This document shows, in pieces, positions 5,819 to 34,302 of a stretch of DNA of 64,000 nucleotides. The first letter of the stretch is position 1. Each line of letters starts with the position of its first letter. Made by a program: the position numbers and the translations under genes. This stretch comes from Pavona decussata (Eukaryota), in contig CDRNST010000025.1 of assembly GCA_977016875.1 (NCBI GenBank), forward strand, positions 372,001-436,000. Direction: 5' to 3'. The notes under the pieces were generated by a model. The model saw only the letters and a program-made list of their open reading frames with translations. It did no database searches and was not told where the DNA came from.

Positions 5819-6700
5819 ATGATTGATACTAGTAGTGTGTGGTTCATCTAAGCTTTGGCAGAAATTCCATTCTTCCTCGCCGGATTAATTGGAAATGTGC
5901 TAGTCATCCGAATTGTGCATAAAACACGAGACATGCATACGACAACTAATTACCTCTTGGCTAACCTTGCTCTTAGCGATGTTATCACCATTTTGTTGGT
6001 GTGGCCGTCAGTGTTGATAGCAAGCTCTGGATTTGGAAAAAAAAGTTGCAAGTTTTATGTTGTTGGTATTCTTCCTACACTGGTTTCATCCTTTACTCTG
6101 ACGGTACTAGCTGTGGAAAGATATCACGCTTTGCTGAAGCCTTTCAGAACAGGATTACGGTTAAAAGAAGACAACATTAAACAGGCGATCGCTGTTATTT
6201 GGATATCAAGCGTCGCCATCTGTTTGCCCGGCTTCTTTTTAAGCGAATGGAGCGAAAATTACTCTTATTGTATTCCAAACAAGGTGTATTTCATCATAAT
6301 CACTATAGTTGTGGCTTATATCCTGATGATAGTATTTCTTTATTGTTATGGATCCTTGATCGAAGGACTGTACTTTTCTCAAACGATATGTACTGAAAAC
6401 ACTAATGAAGACAGAAATTCTGAGAAGAAAAAACTTGTTATTACATTTATCCTAGCGACTGCAGGATTTGTTATTGGTTATGGACCAACTTTCTTTTTTC
6501 ACAACGTTGTAATTTTAGGAGGTAAAGAGCAGACAGCAGGCCTTAAATTCTCTTCAGCTGTCGTTGAATCAATATTCTTTTGTAGTTTATGTATTAACCC
6601 TATTTTGTACGCCTTTCGCAGTACAAACTTCAAAGAAGGATTTAAACGCATAATATTCTGTCGAGAATCGCTGCCTCAAATTGATATGCAAATGTCATGA
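5819..6700 (+). pseudogene. Class A GPCR, A-type copy A2, nonsense at codon 11
   Basis: The paralog-equivalent ATG is at 5819. TTA>TAA at 5849-5851. The listed ORF starts at a TTG, and the next in-frame ATG lies after TM1. The rest of the 7TM frame is intact. Confidence 0.8.
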
Positions 6701-8882: not shown

Positions 8883-9812
8883 TCAAGGCATCTGAATCTC
8901 ATTCTGGGGCACTGGTCCGCGACAGAATATTATGCGTTTAAATCCTTCTTTAAAGCTCGAACTGCGAAAGGCGTAAAACATCGGATTAAGACATAAACTA
9001 CAATAAAAACCTAACAGGAAGAAAACCGAAAGATTTGAATACAACTTATGGTTTATCTCTTTATCAACTCCTGACGCTAAAACTGTGTACAAAATAGCAA
9101 TTGGTCCATAATCAATAACAAATCCTGTAGTTGCCAGGATGAATGTTATAACAAGTTTCTTTTTCTCAGAACTTCTGTCTTCGTTAGTGTCCGCAGCACA
9201 AACCGTGTGAGAAAAGTACAGTCCTTTCATCAAGGATCCATAGCAATAAAGAAATACCATCAATGGAATATAGGCGCTAATAATGCCGTATATGATCCCA
9301 AAAACCTTGCTTTTCGTACTCAAAGGCAAGTTCCATGGGCCAGTACATCTTGAAAGCGATTCGCTCCATTCCTGAACAAAGAATTCTGGAAAAACGGTGA
9401 AAAAGCTTAAGATCCAAACGAGAGCTATTGCCTGCTTGATGTTCTCCTCTGTTAATCGTAAACCCGTTCGGAAAGGCTTTAGCAAAGCGTGATATCTTTC
9501 TATCGCCAGCAACGAAAGAGTTAGTGCTGAGGTAGTTATTAAAATATCACTGAGAACTAAGAACTTGCAAGAGAATTTCCCAAATACGCTGCTTGGATAT
9601 CCAATGTGATACGAAAAGAAATACAACGGAGCCAACAAAATGGTGATGACATCGCTTACAGCCAAGTTTGCCAAAAGGTAATTTGTTGTCGAATGCATGT
9701 CTCGTGTTTTGTAGACAATTCGGATGACCAATGTATTCCCAATGAATCCGATGATATAAACAGGAATAGCGGCCACGAAAAGTCGATAGTTAAGACTCTC
9801 ACTATTAATCAT
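8883..9812 (-). CDS. Class A GPCR, B-type copy B1 (309 aa, peptide-receptor-like orphan)
   Basis: Intact ORF. GNTLV (TM1), LAVSD (TM2), C3.25, ERY, W4.50, ECL2 Cys, NPMFY, helix 8. Confidence 0.92.
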   Translation of the reverse strand: MINSESLNYRLFVAAIPVYIIGFIGNTLVIRIVYKTRDMHSTTNYLLANLAVSDVITILLAPLYFFSYHIGYPSSVFGKFSCKFLVLSDILITTSALTLSLLAIERYHALLKPFRTGLRLTEENIKQAIALVWILSFFTVFPEFFVQEWSESLSRCTGPWNLPLSTKSKVFGIIYGIISAYIPLMVFLYCYGSLMKGLYFSHTVCAADTNEDRSSEKKKLVITFILATTGFVIDYGPIAILYTVLASGVDKEINHKLYSNLSVFFLLGFYCSLCLNPMFYAFRSSSFKEGFKRIIFCRGPVPQNEIQMP

Positions 9813-12210: not shown

Positions 12211-13098
12211 ATGATTGATACTAGTAGTGTGGGGTTCATCTTAGCTTTGGCAGGAATTCCATTCTTCCTCGCGGGATTAATTGGAAATGTGTTGGTCATC
12301 CGAATTGTGCATAAAACACGAGACATGCATACGACAACTAATTACCTCTTGGCTAACCTAGCTCTTAGCGATGTTATCACCATTTTATTGGCGTGGCCGT
12401 CAATGTTAATAGTAAGCTCTGGATTTGAAAAATTCAGTTGCAAGTTGTATGTTGTTAGTATCCTTCCTATACAGGTTTCATCCTTTACTCTGACGGTACT
12501 AGCTGTGGAAAGATATCACGCTTTGCTGAAGCCTTTCAGAACAGGATTACGGTTGAAAGAAGACAACATTAAACAGGCGATCGCTGTTATTTGGATATCA
12601 AGCGTCGCCATCTGTTTGCCCGGCTTCTTTTTAATCGAATGGAGCGAAAATAACTCTTATTGTATTCCAAACAAGGTGTATTTCATCATAATCCTTGTAG
12701 TTCTGACTTATATCCCGATGATAGTATTTCTTTATTGTTATGGATCCTTGATAGAAGGACTGTACTTTTCTCAAACGATATGTACTGAAAACACTAATGA
12801 AGACAGAAATTCTGAGAAGAAAAAACTTGTTATTACATTTATCCTAGCGACTGCCGGATTTGTTATTGGTTATGGGCCAACCTGCATTTCTCACACCGTT
12901 ACAATTTTAGGAGGAGAAGGGCAGACGGGCTTTTTAAAATTGTCTATTCAATTGGCTGTCGTTGAATCAATATTCTTTTGTAGTTTATGCATTAATCCTA
13001 TTTTGTACGCCTTTCGCAGTACAAACTTCAGAAAAGGATTTAAACGCATAATATTCTGTCGAGAACCGCTGCAACAAAATGGTATGGAAATGCCATGA
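12211..13098 (+). CDS. Class A GPCR, A-type copy A3 (295 aa, intact)
   Basis: Intact single-exon 7TM ORF with GN, LAxSD, ERY and NPILY. Very short N-terminus. Confidence 0.92.
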   Translation: MIDTSSVGFILALAGIPFFLAGLIGNVLVIRIVHKTRDMHTTTNYLLANLALSDVITILLAWPSMLIVSSGFEKFSCKLYVVSILPIQVSSFTLTVLAVERYHALLKPFRTGLRLKEDNIKQAIAVIWISSVAICLPGFFLIEWSENNSYCIPNKVYFIIILVVLTYIPMIVFLYCYGSLIEGLYFSQTICTENTNEDRNSEKKKLVITFILATAGFVIGYGPTCISHTVTILGGEGQTGFLKLSIQLAVVESIFFCSLCINPILYAFRSTNFRKGFKRIIFCREPLQQNGMEMP

Positions 13099-15562: not shown

Positions 15563-15712
15563 NNNNNNNNNNNNNNNNNNNNNNNNNNNNNNNNNNNNNN
15601 NNNNNNNNNNNNNNNNNNNNNNNNNNNNNNNNNNNNNNNNNNNNNNNNNNNNNNNNNNNNNNNNNNNNNNNNNNNNNNNNNNNNNNNNNNNNNNNNNNNN
15701 NNNNNNNNNNNN
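15563..15712. other. Assembly gap (150 N)
   Basis: Run of N. Confidence 0.99.
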
Positions 15713-16690: not shown

Positions 16691-17620
16691 TCAAGGCATC
16701 TGAATCTCATTCTGAGGCACTGGTCCGCGACAGAATATTATGCGTTTAAATCTTTCTTTAAAGCTCGAACTGCGAAAGGCGTAAAACATCGGATTAAGAC
16801 ATAAACTGCAATAAAAAGCTAACAGAAAGAAAACCGAAAGATTGGAATACAACTTATCGTTTATCTCTTCATCAACTCCTGACGCTAAAACTGTGTAAAA
16901 AACAGCAATTGGTCCATAACCAATAACAAATCCTGTACTTGCCAGGATGAATGTTATAACAAGTTTCTTTTTTTCAGAACTTCTGTCTTTGTTAGTGTTC
17001 GCAGCACAAACCGTGTGACAAAAGTACAATCCTTTGATCAACGATCCATAGCAATAAAGAAATACCATCGATGGAATATAGGCACTAATAATGCAGTATA
17101 TGATCCCAAAAACTTTGCTTTTCATACTCAAAGGCAAGTTCCATGGGCCAGTACATCTTGAAAGCGATTCACTCCATTCCTGAACAAAGAACTCTGGAAA
17201 AACCAGGAAAAAGCTTGAGATCCAAATGAGAGCTATTGCCCGCTTGATGTTCTCCTCTGTTAATCGTAAACCCGTTCTGAAAGGCTTTAGCAAAGCGTGA
17301 TATCTTTCTATCGCCAACAACGACAGAGTTAGTGCTGAGGTAGTTATTGCAATATCACTGAGAACTAAGAACTTGCAAGAGAATTTCCCAAATGCGCTGC
17401 TTGGATATCCAATGTGATACGAAAAGAAATACAACGGAGCCAACAAAATGGTGATGACATCGCTTACAGCCAAGTTTGCCAAAAGGTAATTTGTTGTCGA
17501 ATGCATGTCTCTTGTTTGGTGGACAATTCGGATGACCAATGTATTCCCAATGAATCCGATGATATAAACAGGAATAGTGGCCACGAAAAGTCGAAAGTTA
17601 AGGCTATCAGTATTAATCAT
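16691..17620 (-). CDS. Class A GPCR, B-type copy B2 (309 aa, intact)
   Basis: Intact ORF, colinear with and highly similar to B1. Confidence 0.92.
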   Translation of the reverse strand: MINTDSLNFRLFVATIPVYIIGFIGNTLVIRIVHQTRDMHSTTNYLLANLAVSDVITILLAPLYFFSYHIGYPSSAFGKFSCKFLVLSDIAITTSALTLSLLAIERYHALLKPFRTGLRLTEENIKRAIALIWISSFFLVFPEFFVQEWSESLSRCTGPWNLPLSMKSKVFGIIYCIISAYIPSMVFLYCYGSLIKGLYFCHTVCAANTNKDRSSEKKKLVITFILASTGFVIGYGPIAVFYTVLASGVDEEINDKLYSNLSVFFLLAFYCSLCLNPMFYAFRSSSFKERFKRIIFCRGPVPQNEIQMP

Positions 17621-19931: not shown

Positions 19932-21716
19932 TAAGCCACCAGATAGATCAAACAATTGGCGGATCCACCTGCTTTTCCTGCGTAAGAGTTAAGAGATAAA
20001 CTACAAAAAGAATCAATAACACAATCTTTAATTAGTTTCTTCCCATTGTCGTCACTTATCGTCCACTCTTACGTTCTCAAATGCTCAGGAGCGCTCAGCG
20101 AGAACATTTCACCAAAATACTTAAAATGTTCTCTCCTGTGTTCTCACATTATTTGCTGCCCTTTTAAAGACATATTCGTGTAAGCTACTACAAATTAATC
20201 AGTTCGGTTGCTTTTGCAGAACGTTTTGGGAAAACGGAATTTTATTCCTCGAATTAACTAGCTGTTAAAGGTTTTACAAAATGTTCGCTGACTCTTTTTG
20301 CATTTTTAACGACATATTTACCCCTTCGAAAATGAAAGAAATTAGTTTGCCCGCAGTGTTATGAGATTTCTGAAGAAGAAATCTTTAGATTTTCTGTGCA
20401 ACTTAAATCCGATTTTCTAAGGCTAAAGGCCATTCCAACATATATCCACAGAAATCAACCCTTGGGTACCCCTGAGAGTTGGGACACTGAACGTAGCATT
20501 AATTAATTCACAAGTAGGATGAGTTTTCAGGTGTGTCGATCTGGCGATATGTTGAAAGAAGTCGACCGCTTTAATAACTTTCGCTTGTTCACGAACGGCG
20601 TATATGTTCGCCAAAATAAAAAATTGGTTTTTCGTTTTGCTCGGTTCCTTTAGCGAAATATCTTCTTTAAATAAGTGAAAACAATCACTTTTTCGTTTTC
20701 CGATTGTAAAAATTTATCACGTTTTCTTCATCTTGAATCACCTGGCAAATGACTAAGGCTGAGAGATGAATGTGGCAAGAATTTGTTGATCGATGTACGT
20801 TACAGGTTAATAGGCATAAGGTAATGCTATGTTAAGAATAACATGAGAGTAAAATACTGTTGCAGGTCTTTAAAAGCATTTTTTTGAGAATTTCGTGCGA
20901 AACAAAATGCAATGGCCAAGTGCCAGTTTAATAACATTAATTTTATGTTTATTTGCATCGATGCTGACTAAAATTACAAGTCCAACCTGCTGTCATTAAT
21001 GCATAATGGGTGAAAAAATAACCTGTTTTCTAACTGCTTAGTGTCATTTTATATTCTGTGAATTTTTTTCATTATTATTATTGTTCTTAATATTATCTTC
21101 CATTTATCTCTGTTTTATTTTCACAATGGTTTGAGAAATTGCACAAAAATGCTTGATTGAAATTGTGCTTTCTCAGTTAAATATGTTCAGTGAAGCTCAT
21201 TAACAACAGAACCGATTATTGCTCAAAATTATTTCCCACTTAATTTACTTCAATAACCTCCCGCTTTGTATAGGTAATTTTAAACATGGTGCGAAAACCT
21301 CCAATAGGTTGCTAAGAACTGATCATTTAATTTGCCGGACAAAAATAATTTTTGGTCTGTTTAGTCATAACTGCCTAAATTATGGATTATGGAACCAGGT
21401 GTTTTCTGGCCAAGCTTCAAATTTAGGCTGAGCCGAGAGCCCCAACAGCGTAGCAGGATCTGAGTCAGTACAGTCTGTGATTGGCCTTTCAACAAGGTCA
21501 TTGTTCGATTGGTCTGGTTATAACCAATTAGATTGGAGAGGATTTCGAAAGAGACTTCCGGTATTTTGTTTCCTTCTTTAGTGGTTCAGAACAAGGATTT
21601 TGGTGCTAATTTGCAGACGGTGTTTAACGGCCGTTGATTCCGTCTGTGACGCAGACTACACGCTTTCAGTCAGCATCAAACAATCAGGCGTGGAACTTGA
21701 AACAAATTTATCCGTT

Positions 21717-22604
21717 ATGATTGATACTAGTAGTGCGTGGTTCATCTTAACTTTGGCAGAAATTCCATTCTTCCTCGCGGGATTAATTGGAAATGTGCTA
21801 GTTATCCGAATTGTGCATAAAACACGAGACATGCATACGACGACGAATTACCTCTTGGCTAACCTAGCTTTTAGCGACGTTATCGCTATGTTGTTGGTGT
21901 GGCCGGTAATGTTGATACTAAGTTCTGGGTACGAAAAATTCAGTTGCAAATTTTCTGTCGTTTGTACTCTTCCTGTACTGGTTTCATCCTTTACTCTGAC
22001 GGTACTAGCCGTGGAAAGATATCATGCTTTGCTGAAGCCTTTCAGGACAGGATTACGGTTAAAAGAAGACAACATTAAAAAGGCGATCGCTGTTATTTGG
22101 ATATCAAGCGTCGCCATCTGTTTGCCCGGCTTCTTTTTAAGCGAATGGAGCGAAATATACTCTTACTGTATTTCAAACAAGGTGTATTTCATCATAATCC
22201 TTGTAGTTCTGGCTTATATCCCGATGATAGTATTTCTTTATTGCTATGGATCCTTGATCGAAGGACTGTACTTTTCTCACACGATATGTACTGAAAACAC
22301 TAATGAAGACAGAAATTCTGAGAAAAAAAAACTTGTTATTACATTCATCCTAGCGACCGCAGGATTTGTTATTGGTTATGGACCAACTTGCATTTTTTAC
22401 ACAGTTGCAATTTTAGGAGGTGAAAGGAAGACAGCTGGCTTTAAATTCTCTAATCAATTGGCTGTCGTTGAATCAATATTCTTTTGTAGTTTATGTCTTA
22501 ACCCTATTTTGTACGCCTTTCGCAGTACAAACTTCAGAGAAGGATTTAAACGCATAATATTCTGTCGAGAATCGCCGCCACAAATTGATATGGAAATGTC
22601 ATGA
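21717..22604 (+). CDS. Class A GPCR, A-type copy A4 (295 aa, intact)
   Basis: ATG at 21717 is equivalent to the paralogs' start (the ORF track begins at an upstream TTG). All 7TM motifs present. Confidence 0.9.
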   Translation: MIDTSSAWFILTLAEIPFFLAGLIGNVLVIRIVHKTRDMHTTTNYLLANLAFSDVIAMLLVWPVMLILSSGYEKFSCKFSVVCTLPVLVSSFTLTVLAVERYHALLKPFRTGLRLKEDNIKKAIAVIWISSVAICLPGFFLSEWSEIYSYCISNKVYFIIILVVLAYIPMIVFLYCYGSLIEGLYFSHTICTENTNEDRNSEKKKLVITFILATAGFVIGYGPTCIFYTVAILGGERKTAGFKFSNQLAVVESIFFCSLCLNPILYAFRSTNFREGFKRIIFCRESPPQIDMEMS

Positions 22605-30076: not shown

Positions 30077-32197
30077 TTACCTTTCAATCATTCTGCTCTC
30101 CTCACTTCTTGACAAGCGCACTCGAAGGAGTCTGAAGTTACAGCCTGATAGTCCGATGGCAATGAGGGGCATACGTAGACAGGCCCCAAGACAGAAAGGC
30201 CGTTCCTCGATATTCAAGACACTGAGTAGATGGCCAGATCTGATACTAAACAGCCTAACAATGTTAACACGACTGCAGCAAACCAAAGACTCGCCATCAC
30301 TGACAATCTTACAGTCGACAATGTCAAAATGACCGGGAAGTAAAGTGTGCACGGTTGTCCCTGTGGGAACGTTAAGAACGTGCACTCCACAGCCATTTTC
30401 AAGAGTGTTCCACGTAACAACCACATCTCCTTTGGGAGGGAACACGCATCGTGCAAACTGGCCTGGCCTTACTTCTGGGTGCAAGGGCCCCATGTGTCTT
30501 TGCCACATCACTGAAGAGGTATTTGACAATCCGCCCATCCCCAAGTATTCGAGACTTCCAGATGCTTCATTAATGATAGCCAAATCTGTGCTGTTGTTGT
30601 TACATGCCAACACCCTTCTCTGTTGAAGACAAACCGAAATGGTTGACATAACGTCTCCTCTGGAAGTAGCCAGAATGGTCACCTCAGCATGCCTTCCCAC
30701 ACATGCCACTTGCTCCTCAGATAAAGGGATCACTTTTCGGATTTCAGTCAAGTTGGACCAACGTCGGACACACACAGTCAACTCACAATTCCAGAGTTCA
30801 GGGCAATTTCCTCTTGTGAGTAAAACAACACCATCTGCAACAGGTGTGAGTGAGATGATCCAAGCTTCTTTTTGTGCCCTCAGCTCCAAACTAGAAACGT
30901 CCCACACAGTTAACTTTGTTTGAGTTTCCCACTCTTTGGTTGCCACGTAAACTCTCTCGCCATTTAAAGAAAAGCTAACCTCTCTCACCAGAGCTTTCGA
31001 ATTCTTCCCTTTTCCCTTCAGTTCAGCAACACTTAGAATACTCAAGTAGTTTAGATCAGGGCTACCCATTAATACACTTTCTTCACCAAGCTTGGCGATG
31101 CGACCAACGAAACAAAATGGAATTACACTGGCGAACTGGTCACTTGAAACGTCAATAGGGTCCCCTAGAAGAAATACTTCATCACTGCCAAACCGATGAG
31201 TGTGTCGTTCACGTTCAAAAAATTCTGCATGCCAACCTTTTGCAAGAGTTTTAAAACGACAGGTTCTTTTATAACCCAGTCTCATATGCAGACAAACAAT
31301 CTCTTGGTTGTCAACAGAAAAATTCATAAATCCAATACCCCATCCTGGATCAAACATTGTACGATACTTTGCCAAACCATTCGCCAAATCAACTGAATAA
31401 ATCGCACCTGTTGAACCGAAGCCATCATATGAAACCGCTACGAGCCTCCCATCATCAGACCATGCAAAAGAAAAAATTCTTGCATATTCGTTGACCATGA
31501 TACGAGTAACCTCTGTACCATTTTCAAGATTCCACATAATTACACAGTTACGTTTTCCTGGAAAATCAGTTAACATTTTGCTTTTGTCTTTACAAAAAGC
31601 ACAAACGGTAAAAATGCAGTCACTCGCAGGAAAGAGTTTCTTCACGTCTCCCCCAATGGTATATACGCTGGCAAGGTTTCCCTGTAAGATGAAGTCACCA
31701 AGGGGATAGAAAGCAACCGACTGGTAAAATGACATAGAACCACAATACCAGGCCCTATATGCAGTTCCAGGAGGCACGGCTTTCCAGCTGTGATATTTGT
31801 CATAGTTTCTCTTTACTAAGACTTGCCTCACCCATTCTAGCTGCCCAGTCTTGAGGGACCAGAGCTGAACTGTTCCATCCCAACACTCGCATACCGTGTA
31901 GTCTAAATCTGGAGAAACATCGGAACAGCACACGGCACTTGAACAATAAAACTGTGCTTGGATAACCCTTTGTGGACCCAGGTTGTCAATGTATTCTATG
32001 AATGGTACATCAAGGAACCTGGTCTGTAGAACATTTATCGCTTCTGGATGAAGTTCTCCTCCTCCTTCATTCAGAGCTGTTTGGAGGATAACCCAAGGAA
32101 GGTCCCTTAAGGTACTGCTGTACTTCCTTAACAGAAATACCAAGGTACTCAAGGATCTCTGGCTTCCTTCAGACAATAGGACTGATGTTTCCCTCTC
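30077..32197 (-). CDS. C-terminal WD40/beta-propeller half of an NLR-like HEPN-NACHT-WD40 protein
   Basis: ~700-aa ORF with WD-like units (DGTVQLWSLKTG, VIMWNLENG, FAWSDDG, LTVWDVSS, VRLFSIRSG). Continues the NACHT ORF after a frame change. Confidence 0.85.
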   Translation of the reverse strand, partial: ERETSVLLSEGSQRSLSTLVFLLRKYSSTLRDLPWVILQTALNEGGGELHPEAINVLQTRFLDVPFIEYIDNLGPQRVIQAQFYCSSAVCCSDVSPDLDYTVCECWDGTVQLWSLKTGQLEWVRQVLVKRNYDKYHSWKAVPPGTAYRAWYCGSMSFYQSVAFYPLGDFILQGNLASVYTIGGDVKKLFPASDCIFTVCAFCKDKSKMLTDFPGKRNCVIMWNLENGTEVTRIMVNEYARIFSFAWSDDGRLVAVSYDGFGSTGAIYSVDLANGLAKYRTMFDPGWGIGFMNFSVDNQEIVCLHMRLGYKRTCRFKTLAKGWHAEFFERERHTHRFGSDEVFLLGDPIDVSSDQFASVIPFCFVGRIAKLGEESVLMGSPDLNYLSILSVAELKGKGKNSKALVREVSFSLNGERVYVATKEWETQTKLTVWDVSSLELRAQKEAWIISLTPVADGVVLLTRGNCPELWNCELTVCVRRWSNLTEIRKVIPLSEEQVACVGRHAEVTILATSRGDVMSTISVCLQQRRVLACNNNSTDLAIINEASGSLEYLGMGGLSNTSSVMWQRHMGPLHPEVRPGQFARCVFPPKGDVVVTWNTLENGCGVHVLNVPTGTTVHTLLPGHFDIVDCKIVSDGESLVCCSRVNIVRLFSIRSGHLLSVLNIEERPFCLGACLRMPLIAIGLSGCNFRLLRVRLSRSEESRMIER

Positions 32198-32217
32198 CTG
32201 AAAACAAAACATCTCTT

Positions 32218-34302
32218 TCAATTGAAAGCTGCTACACTGTTCACACAGAGCTTGGCATACACAAGGTCTAAGCTTACCACGTACTTCTTCACCCACTCCT
32301 CCACGCTGTATGGTCTTCTGATTCCATCTAACAGTAACATGTGGTGCGTACCATGCTGAAGGGCATACGTTTCAGTGCCAACATACTGTGCATTACAAGA
32401 GCCTCTTTCCTTCACACACTCAAGCTCTTCAGCACAAAGTTTAGAGAGAATCAGGTGACCTTCCTGCTCATCCATAATGTAGTCATGCTCCCCGTAGCTT
32501 GAAACATCTGTAAGCCAGTCTTTAACTGACTTATGAATGACATGAAGACAGTCATCACGAATAGGGAGAAGGGAAGACACACTTCCTACAGCTTTTCGAA
32601 CCTTCTGCCTTGATACCAACGAGTTGCTGCTTGGTGCCAATATCTTGTAGACAAAACCAATTGGCAAGGGTTCTGTTGCAACAGTAACAGCACAAAGCAA
32701 ATTCAGGAAATTCTCTTGTCGGATACCAAGCTCCTTGATAAGCTCATTCTCGAGTCGTTTGAAATAGGAGTCATAGACAGAAGAAATCCCTAATGGAAGA
32801 TTGACATCAAGATTTCCTTGAACTAGGACTGATGGATTCTCTTCGATAAATGAAACCAGAAATGAAGCATACAGCATGAGACCCTCAGACTTCAACACTA
32901 GCTTGTTCAAAATGGCTTCAGCGTCTTCTGGTTTAATGACATGCTGTAGCTTCCTTTCATATAATGTCCTGACATCATCCAAATTCAGTTCATCGTTTGC
33001 CTCCAGCTGAAATGGTTTTAAATGTTTCAATGCTTCTGTGATGTTGCGCTGTGGACGAGTGGTAACTAAAAATCTAATCCAAACTGGAAGCTTGGAAAAG
33101 TGATTTGCAATCACATCAAGCAACTCATTGCGTTCCTGGTATTCACTTTCATCCAGGCCATCTATCACCATAAGCATGCTTGTTCTGGGCTCAGTTACGG
33201 TGCTCAGGGGTTCCTTGAAAAGCACTGCAAACAGTTCTTCCACTCCCATGTTGTTAAGATCGCTGCCCAAGTTTCTTGACAGCAGTTCTTCAAGAGCACA
33301 TTTGTACTCTGGCAGAGAATGGGATAAGTGACAGGCCAACGACTGAAGCATCAACTGAGGATTTCGGTAACGAATGTTATTGTGTTGACAAAAGTGGCTC
33401 CCTGACAATCTGCCAGCGTCTTGCATTCTTTGACAAATAACAGCGGCGATCACTGACTTCCCCATTCCTGCATTTCCACTGATTACCATCACGCGATTCT
33501 GCGAGCTTGCGTCATCCATCCACTGTTGTACTCTTCTAAAAACCCACTCACGTGTATGGTCTTGAAATTTCTGCAAGTGATACTCGATGTCTCCTCTAAA
33601 CTCTGACTTGGCAAGGTTCTGACGATTGCTTGAGACCCGCTTGAATTCTTTGAGGTCTGCCTGGATAGTGTCTAAAGATTGCCGTATGTCATTGAGCTGT
33701 GCCTTAATGTCCTCTTCCCTGCTCACCCAGTCAAACAACACATCAAGATAATCTTCCTCCCCACAGTGCTCTGTCTTCAGTCTATCTATTTCAGCTTGAT
33801 CCAGCCCAAGAGCCACAAGAACAGCGCTGATTTCTAGCCAAAGCGATTGGAATGCTGCAGCATCAATACCTGTGGTCGTCACATGACCATACAACACATT
33901 ACGATAGTATTTAACGCGGGCGAGGTTAGCCTCAAGTGAGGGGTCACCTGGCGGTGGCTTAGTGTGCCACCCCGATGTGGGAGGAGGGAGGCCACAAATC
34001 TCGATAAGTAGGAGAAACAGGAGAGTGATATCAAAAGTATTGGAGTTTGGGACACCTCCAGCAGGCGGGAATAATTTTTCCCACTGATGGCCATTTAGAA
34101 TTCTTCGACGCAAAAGGTTGTTAAGAATTGAATAACTGGTATTGAGATCCGCAGCTAAGTTGGCTGGAGGGTGATGACGATCAAAAACGTTCCTTAAGAC
34201 TGTTGTTCCGCCATCGATGAGAAGCCTTCTAAGCTTGCCTCCATTTGTCTTCTCTGGCGAACTGACCAAGGGTTTTGTTGTTGCTGGTACTGCTGTTGCC
34301 AT
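32218..34302 (-). CDS. N-terminal half: DZIP3-like HEPN domain, short coiled coil, NACHT (STAND) NTPase
   Basis: HEPN-type FDITLLFLLL..ICGL..P..GW and R-N-x4-H (RNVLYGH, 33903-33883). Walker A GNAGMGKS (33477-33454). Walker B MLMVIDGLDE (to 33148). FLVTTRP sensor. HKSVKDWL winged-helix motif. A splice acceptor (ctttcttttgtcAG) lies ~36 nt before the ATG. Confidence 0.9.
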   Translation of the reverse strand: MATAVPATTKPLVSSPEKTNGGKLRRLLIDGGTTVLRNVFDRHHPPANLAADLNTSYSILNNLLRRRILNGHQWEKLFPPAGGVPNSNTFDITLLFLLLIEICGLPPPTSGWHTKPPPGDPSLEANLARVKYYRNVLYGHVTTTGIDAAAFQSLWLEISAVLVALGLDQAEIDRLKTEHCGEEDYLDVLFDWVSREEDIKAQLNDIRQSLDTIQADLKEFKRVSSNRQNLAKSEFRGDIEYHLQKFQDHTREWVFRRVQQWMDDASSQNRVMVISGNAGMGKSVIAAVICQRMQDAGRLSGSHFCQHNNIRYRNPQLMLQSLACHLSHSLPEYKCALEELLSRNLGSDLNNMGVEELFAVLFKEPLSTVTEPRTSMLMVIDGLDESEYQERNELLDVIANHFSKLPVWIRFLVTTRPQRNITEALKHLKPFQLEANDELNLDDVRTLYERKLQHVIKPEDAEAILNKLVLKSEGLMLYASFLVSFIEENPSVLVQGNLDVNLPLGISSVYDSYFKRLENELIKELGIRQENFLNLLCAVTVATEPLPIGFVYKILAPSSNSLVSRQKVRKAVGSVSSLLPIRDDCLHVIHKSVKDWLTDVSSYGEHDYIMDEQEGHLILSKLCAEELECVKERGSCNAQYVGTETYALQHGTHHMLLLDGIRRPYSVEEWVKKYVVSLDLVYAKLCVNSVAAFN

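Follow-up and report, generated by a model that had tools for sequence, protein, structure and literature searches.

The minus-strand coding locus at 34302..30077 of a 64 kb stretch of Pavona decussata DNA (contig CDRNST010000025.1, positions 372,001 to 436,000; this whole stretch is called the window below) is, on the evidence of its sequence, a genuine stony-coral gene that encodes a large sensor of NLR-like type, whose HEPN head is predicted to cut RNA. On balance, we favour its assignment as a divergent single-copy member, probably functional, of the stony-coral HEPN_DZIP3-NACHT-WD40 STAND (NLR-like) family. Its reading frame is broken within an 80-nucleotide (nt) segment with GT-AG ends. 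We consider it likely that this segment is an intronised piece of an exon, coding in every paralog and an intron in this lineage. Whether the predicted receptor is full length depends on the splicing of this segment.

Gene structure and the 80 nt segment

The initial annotation treated 30077-34302 as one receptor. The domains that it placed there were recovered, on the minus strand, but the interval consists of two overlapping open reading frames (ORFs) in different frames instead of a single ORF, as seen in the ORF list, and a single protein requires the removal of 80 nt. The two long ORFs overlap by 79 nt and the frame is lost near 32226-32219. If the 80 nt of 32277..32198 are excised (phase 0), exon A, with 675 codons, is followed in frame by exon B, with 706 codons and a stop. 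All homology searches were run separately on exon A and exon B. The ATG at 34302 is immediately preceded by an in-frame TGA, and the start of exon A, MATA..SS.EKTNG, is common to the closest paralogs (15/15). The G+C content is 44-45% in the gene body and 35-39% in the surroundings.

The segment, GTAAGC...TGTTTTGTTTTCAG, is preceded by GTG and followed by GAG. It has GT-AG ends in a consensus context and its removal restores the frame. It encodes VSLDLVYAKLCVNSVAA in the frame of exon A and KEMFCFQ in the frame of exon B, and both readings have their counterpart in a single, unbroken homologous stretch, YV(V/L)D(L/V)ELVYAKLCVNS..AxED.V..Q, in 15/15 paralogs; the segment is therefore former coding sequence. 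The 15 closest paralogs in the same genome all read through the homologous sequence unbroken. The acceptor is a CAGGAG tandem of the NAGNAG type (window 32195-32200); use of the second AG, 3 nt downstream, would give an 83 nt intron and a protein one residue shorter.

An orthologue from a sister taxon was found in another data set (Logan contig L013, 91% nt identity including the flanks), and two further runs provided the sister-taxon contigs L051 and L052. The first bases of one of them (L051:1-23), which we take to be an Illumina adapter remnant, would not be coral sequence. GTAAGC and TTTTGTTTTCAG are retained in all three contigs. Their segment has an extra TT near 32259 but no TTCAA at 32226-32222, which gives it a length of 77 nt and a frame break at a different place. 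Because its length without the indel of either taxon is 75 nt, the ancestral segment would have comprised 75 nt, or 25 codons in frame. The splice signals rest on derived substitutions common to both taxa (for example GAC to AGC, and GTT to TTT twice). Two independent indels within the same 75 nt, together with shared derived splice signals, are what would be predicted for an intron that was already spliced in the common ancestor.

To estimate how often such signals occur, the coding sequence of paralogs (70.6 kb) was scanned for GTAAG with a pyrimidine-rich YAG at a distance of 50-150 nt downstream; this null replaced an enumeration of GT-AG pairs. Eight signal pairs were counted. The gene has exactly one such pair, which spans the break and restores the frame; the estimated chance of this is about 0.3%. 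What sets this copy apart from other members of a known family is that 25 codons have probably become an intron.

Divergence from the sister-taxon orthologue

Relative to L013, the ratio of nonsynonymous to synonymous substitution rates (dN/dS) was 0.47 for HEPN, 0.21 for NACHT plus winged helix and 0.71 for exon B overall. In the second propeller, 45 nonsynonymous and five synonymous changes were counted (binomial p 0.007 against a 3:1 expectation). NACHT is under purifying selection, and nonsynonymous change exceeds synonymous change in the second propeller. The indel clusters of exon B have net lengths of -3, -9 and -6, all multiples of three. The nt divergence is 3-8% over most of the gene and rises to 10-21% in 32052-31153, part of the first propeller, where dS (0.19) and dN (0.15) are both raised; this tract may be a hypervariable sensor surface, a gene-conversion tract or an old allelic lineage. 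Exon B remained free of stops in 0.04% of simulations with 196 random substitutions. Since the frame breaks of the two taxa are independent, the simulation rules out only an old unrescued break.

Domain organization

The N-terminal DZIP3-type HEPN domain with R134 and H140, as initially annotated, was borne out by Pfam: PF18738 scored 153 bits against a curated cut-off of 27, with model positions 1-137 of 144 covered, and residues 134-140 read RNVLYGH. All 133 aligned HEPN domains (homologues and paralogs) share R134 and N135, and 129 of them also have H140. Conservation is lower at 20 more distant HEPN loci in this genome, of which 17 retain RN and 14 retain H. The AlphaFold model of the domain (76 sequences, pLDDT 85) is all-helical. 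A Foldseek search of the PDB with this model gave nothing significant, probably because the long helix dominates. In an exhaustive VIA-align comparison the top match was the HEPN domain of Csm6 (4rgp_B; Z 7.5, rmsd 4.0, 113 residues, model 19-168), and all remaining rows matched the long helix, many of them being coiled-coil helices. The modelled match to Csm6 agrees with a HEPN fold and is not proof taken alone. The annotated short coiled coil corresponds in the model to a single long helix; its coiled-coil state is only possible.

The NACHT module, whose Walker A and B motifs had correctly been called intact (GNAGMGKS and LMVIDGLDE), was matched above cut-off by both NPHP3_N (PF24883, E 7.6e-30, 105 bits, residues 250-416) and NACHT (PF05729, E 9.5e-10, 39 bits) in Pfam. 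The match of exon A to NB-ARC was weak (24 bits versus 105 for NPHP3_N). Sensor-1 (FLVTTRP, residues 411-417) and the winged-helix His (in VIHKSVKDWL, residues 588-597) are intact. The gene thus has the marks of a STAND/NACHT protein: Walker A, Walker B (hhhhDGLDE), sensor-1 Arg and winged-helix His. No death-fold domain (CARD, PYD, DD or DED) was matched by Pfam at E<=1, as the initial annotation had it, and neither was a BIR, TIR or LRR domain. A sequence search of solved structures returned no match for exon A.

Exon B had been described as a long, degenerate WD40 region, and its Pfam matches to WD40 and propeller families are indeed weak; PF00400 found one repeat (32.8 bits versus a cut-off of 27). 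A sequence search of solved structures likewise gave weak WD40 matches. The AlphaFold model of exon B (22 homologues, pLDDT 74) contains about 56 strands and was matched by Foldseek to tandem double propellers with E values of 1e-21 to 1e-18 and a probability of 1.00 at best; among them were UTP proteins, Aip1 (1nr0, two seven-bladed propellers) and Apaf-1 (3shf, 5juy). As modelled, exon B is a tandem double beta-propeller. No DNA-level tandem repeat was detected in the WD40 region by TRF. The coordinates of all features are collected in Table 1.

Table 1. Features of the HEPN-NACHT-WD40 locus, of its sister-taxon orthologue and of related or neighbouring loci. Positions refer to the window unless a contig is named.
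Feature	Position	Strand	Details
Upstream ORF	34302..32218	minus	694 aa, ATG start
Downstream ORF	32296..30077	minus	739 aa
Exon A	32278..34302	minus	675 codons; HEPN, helix, NACHT, winged helix; ORF translation and Pfam
HEPN_DZIP3 domain, aa 46-181	33760..34167	minus	PF18738, E 6.2e-45
Predicted catalytic motif R134-N135-V-L-Y-G-H140, aa 134-140	33883..33903	minus	Rx5H (R-N-x4-H); translation
Single long helix, aa 183-233	33604..33756	minus	About 50 residues; possible coiled-coil stalk between HEPN and NACHT; model secondary structure
NACHT/NPHP3_N P-loop NTPase, aa 250-430	33013..33555	minus	PF24883, PF05729
Walker A GNAGMGKS, aa 276-283	33454-33477	minus	Intact
Walker B LMVIDGLDE, aa 377-385	33148-33174	minus	Intact
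TANC1-like winged helix-turn-helix, aa 534-621	32440..32703	minus	PF25521 (HTH_TANC1), E 5.4e-7, 29.9 bits versus cut-off 27
80 nt GT-AG segment, phase 0, GTAAGC...TTTTGTTTTCAG	32198..32277	minus	Former coding sequence, probable intronised exon piece
Exon B	30077..32197	minus	706 codons and stop; short helical linker, two WD40 beta-propellers
Hypervariable stretch, first propeller	31153..32052	minus	10-21% nt divergence from sister-taxon orthologue
Sister-taxon HEPN lesions	L013:1189 and L013:1388-1391 (also L052); L051:250		L051: first lesion only
HEPN_DZIP3 clusters	Contigs C104 (2.80-3.20 Mb), C273 (1.25-1.35 Mb), C129 (1.89-2.06 Mb), C180, C219, C66, C214		
Seven-transmembrane (7TM) receptor ORFs	719-1219, 5855-6700, 8883-9812, 12211-13098, 16691-17620, 21600-22604, 49001-49801, 55175-56206	both	PF00001

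Proposed mechanism

STAND NTPases (Apaf-1, NLRs, Avs) oligomerise when a ligand engages their C-terminal repeats. HEPN ribonucleases (RNases) such as RNase L, Ire1, Csm6 and RnlA (PMC8266594) need a dimer to form the Rx4-6H site. By analogy with these systems a ligand-gated RNase mechanism is plausible. The order of HEPN effector, NACHT switch and WD40 sensor put forward at the outset was confirmed and, with the conserved R-N-x4-H motif, would suit an RNase switched on by oligomerisation. Splicing out the 80 nt segment would join the NACHT half to the WD40 half in frame. In the working model that we consider most likely, the propellers would bind a ligand and thereby release oligomerisation of the NACHT module, dependent on nucleoside triphosphate (NTP), as in Apaf-1, NLRs and bacterial Avs. 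The oligomer would bring the N-terminal HEPN domains, held on the long helix, into dimers as in the HEPN RNases named above; RNA would then be cut at the composite Rx4-6H site that each dimer makes up. An antiviral, an anti-transposon or a cell-death response might follow.

Points against a functional receptor and alternative readings

Several observations weigh against the reading of the gene as a functional, spliced receptor with an RNase head. In all three contigs of the sister-taxon orthologue, 1 nt is deleted at codon 117, ahead of the RNx4H motif, and two of the three (L013 and L052) also have a 22 nt deletion at codons 184-192. Such lesions mean that this lineage can lose HEPN. Because the HEPN frame is broken there, the effector is dispensable or decaying in the sister taxon, whereas the frames of NACHT and WD40 stay open in this HEPN-broken version; the P. 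decussata copy keeps the ancestral reading WHTKPPP. Frame repair is possible with 366 different GT-AG pairs, among which the 80 nt one did not stand out in a crude consensus count, so that the mere existence of a frame-repairing intron means little. A stretch of 25-27 residues, conserved in every paralog, would be lost through splicing. In a quick IQ-TREE phylogeny the copy lies on a long branch (0.33 versus a median of 0.079) adjoining the C66-type clade. The Z score of 7.5 for the HEPN fold is within the range reached by helical bundles by chance, and a literature search found no published RNase activity assay for any DZIP3-type HEPN.

The locus could instead be a young pseudogene or truncated gene, in which the frameshift near 32226-32219 is unrescued, the product is at most a 694-residue HEPN-NACHT-winged-helix protein without a sensor and exon B is an open relic. 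We regard this as unlikely. All 15 paralogs do read through the segment, but the only lesion in 4.2 kb of this copy falls inside the only donor/acceptor pair of consensus quality in the gene, with the frame restored, and the signals of that pair rest on the derived substitutions common to the sister taxon. NLR-like families turn over fast, this copy is on a long branch and the same gene carries lesions in the sister taxon (the 1 nt deletion at codon 117 and the polymorphic 22 nt deletion); against this, the copy retains 97% (178 of 184) of the exon A columns with a family-wide conservation of 95% or more. In exon B, 87 of the 102 columns conserved at 90% or more are retained. The independence of the breaks in the two taxa can be read both ways: each could be recent, the open exon B then reflecting past selection only, yet the second indel falls within the very same 75 nt segment.

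A second alternative leaves the gene intact and makes its HEPN domain a non-nuclease, that is, an RNA-binding module or a homotypic adaptor in place of a death-fold which might recruit HEPN-only proteins. The human protein DZIP3 is a known RNA-binding ubiquitin ligase and is not known to be an RNase. Dozens of short HEPN_DZIP3 frames (210-320 residues) in the clusters of this genome would suit such an adaptor, as would the loss of R or H in some paralogs and the literature search, which found no published activity for the DZIP3-type domain; the coral domain has also been called 'RNA-binding' (PMC10236652). This is the main functional rival and an improbable one, since the near-invariance of R, N and H in 133 sequences, a signature of active HEPN RNases (PMC3710099), argues against it and is hard to explain without catalysis.

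An assembly indel error, with a true sequence of one continuous ORF of about 1,400 codons like those of the paralogs and with neither intron nor frameshift, is very unlikely: the break does adjoin short T and A runs (gcagctttcaattgaaag), and the second contig with the gene (ENA ERZ25073751), being 100% identical over 10 kb, provides no independent confirmation, but the difference from the orthologue is a 5 nt TTCAA block and not a change in homopolymer length, three sister-taxon contigs from three separate runs are also without a continuous frame in the segment, and no other frame error occurs in 4.2 kb.

Returning to intronisation of the 25 ancestral codons, a further step would be to give retention of the segment a functional role, with splicing as a switch between the full receptor and a sensor-less 694-residue HEPN-NACHT protein acting as a decoy or in an auto-active form; this extension is doubtful, more so than either of the first two alternatives. 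If the segment is intronised, production of the full HEPN-NACHT-WD40 receptor now depends on splicing. Intronisation would also be a tidy, datable case of intron gain from coding sequence, of moderate interest for research on the origin of introns.

Related genes in this genome and in other corals

The search with exon A returned at least 624 relatives. The word search covered relatives up to 1.75 times the exon length, and longer full-length relatives fall outside it. Named relatives of exon A come from the stony corals Oculina patagonica, Porites evermanni and Montipora foliosa; the best are 61-68% identical and have an identical domain order. At least 114 HEPN_DZIP3 matches were found in the same genome (602 Mb), mostly in tandem clusters. 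The frames at these loci comprise dozens of 210-320 residues (HEPN-only proteins or first exons), about 16 of approximately 950 residues and 15 of 1,400-2,100 residues. The 15 closest paralogs are located in three clusters on contigs C219, C66 and C214 and are all uninterrupted ORFs (1,403-2,113 residues), with 52-64% identity in exon A and 30-37% in exon B.

Two variants were observed within the family. The 665-residue protein P0059 from an ENA coral contig has three tandem HEPN_DZIP3 domains (18-197, 236-415 and 454-621) and no NACHT, which is unusual. L044 and L046, both on C214, are near-identical paralogs of 2,113 residues with about 630 extra residues in the WD40 region, presumably further propeller repeats; the insert lies between segments matching exon B residues 7-503 and 506-695.

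Genomic setting

The HEPN-NACHT gene is the only one of its family on its contig, and no paralog was found within the 64 kb window. On the two strands of the window, eight ORFs without introns match rhodopsin-family 7TM receptors (PF00001, E 1e-20 to 1e-39), so that the gene sits in a cluster of G-protein-coupled receptor (GPCR) genes and not in an immune-gene cluster. A run of 150 N at window 15563-15712 is an assembly gap or a masked stretch.

Comparison with known systems

The architecture is not new. The DZIP3/hRUL138 HEPN family, including fusions to NACHT, was described by Anantharaman et al. in 2013, with expansions in Nematostella and oyster (PMC3710099). Apart from LRRs, the domain most often joined to NACHT in anthozoans is a DZIP3-type HEPN, and species have between 17 and 83 such proteins (Emery et al. 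2021; PMC8260672); with the number of HEPN_DZIP3 loci counted here, this agrees with the expansion in cnidarians claimed at the outset. More than 50 HEPN-NACHT proteins were reported in the pearl oyster together with an Rx4-6H logo and an RNase hypothesis (Takeuchi et al. 2022; PMC9646362), and Noel et al. (2023; PMC10236652) noted that NACHT proteins of corals, with either LRR or WD40 repeats, bear many DZIP3-like HEPN domains at the N-terminus. Fusion of a DZIP3-type HEPN to NACHT and its expansion in cnidarians and molluscs are thus already described, and an RNase or immune-sensor role for the family has already been proposed (PMC3710099, PMC9646362, PMC10236652). The gene adds no new architecture or principle. 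HEPN-NACHT genes rank with the largest groups of NLR-like genes in corals and bivalves. Being a singleton with intact motifs, and having a HEPN-broken orthologue in the sister taxon, this copy lends itself to a first biochemical test and to comparing versions with and without the effector.

The present copy shares with the cnidarian and molluscan HEPN-NACHT proteins an N-terminal PF18738 domain followed by NACHT and C-terminal repeats, an Rx4-6H motif with N after R, and lineage-specific expansion; its best matches are stony-coral proteins, with up to 64% identity. It differs from them as a singleton outside the tandem clusters, on a long branch and interrupted by the 80 nt segment. In the pearl oyster the commonest motif is Rx4H, whereas this copy has Rx5H. 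The description 'animal NLR-like' is fair as far as likeness goes, but the protein is not an NLR in the strict sense, because it has WD40 repeats instead of LRRs, no death fold and a NACHT module of the NPHP3/TANC1 type.

Among vertebrate proteins, NWD1, TANC1/2 and NPHP3 are comparable in that the best NTPase models for this gene are NPHP3_N and HTH_TANC1, a likeness drawn through Pfam models; unlike the present gene, they are without a HEPN domain. In NWD1, too, NACHT occurs together with WD40. Fungal HET-E/NWD proteins and bacterial Avs/bNACHT systems are built on the same logic, in which an N-terminal effector, toxic or enzymatic, precedes a STAND NTPase and a sensor made of repeats, and HET-E has the NACHT-WD40 arrangement itself. 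In contrast to HET-E/NWD, no HET domain was found here by Pfam and the WD40 repeats are not of the near-identical, concerted-evolution type. The NCBIfam Avs2 model reached 17.6 bits against a cut-off of 1000, with no full-length match, and the PADLOC Avs2 models up to 21.4 bits over residues 197-310 only, a region leading into and including the P-loop.

RNase L, Ire1 and Csm6 are alike in their HEPN Rx4-6H motif and in an activity that needs a dimer brought together by a regulatory domain. There the regulator is a pseudokinase or CARF domain, whereas here it would be a STAND NTPase, and the RNase role is a prediction. Apaf-1 is freed to oligomerise when its propellers bind a ligand. It has an NB-ARC (AP-ATPase) module and a CARD adaptor, unlike the NACHT and the predicted enzyme-type head of this gene, but the two agree in the order of effector, STAND NTPase, winged helix and tandem double propeller, and the exon B model matches the Apaf-1 structures 3shf, 3sfz and 5juy at E 1e-19 to 1e-20 in Foldseek.

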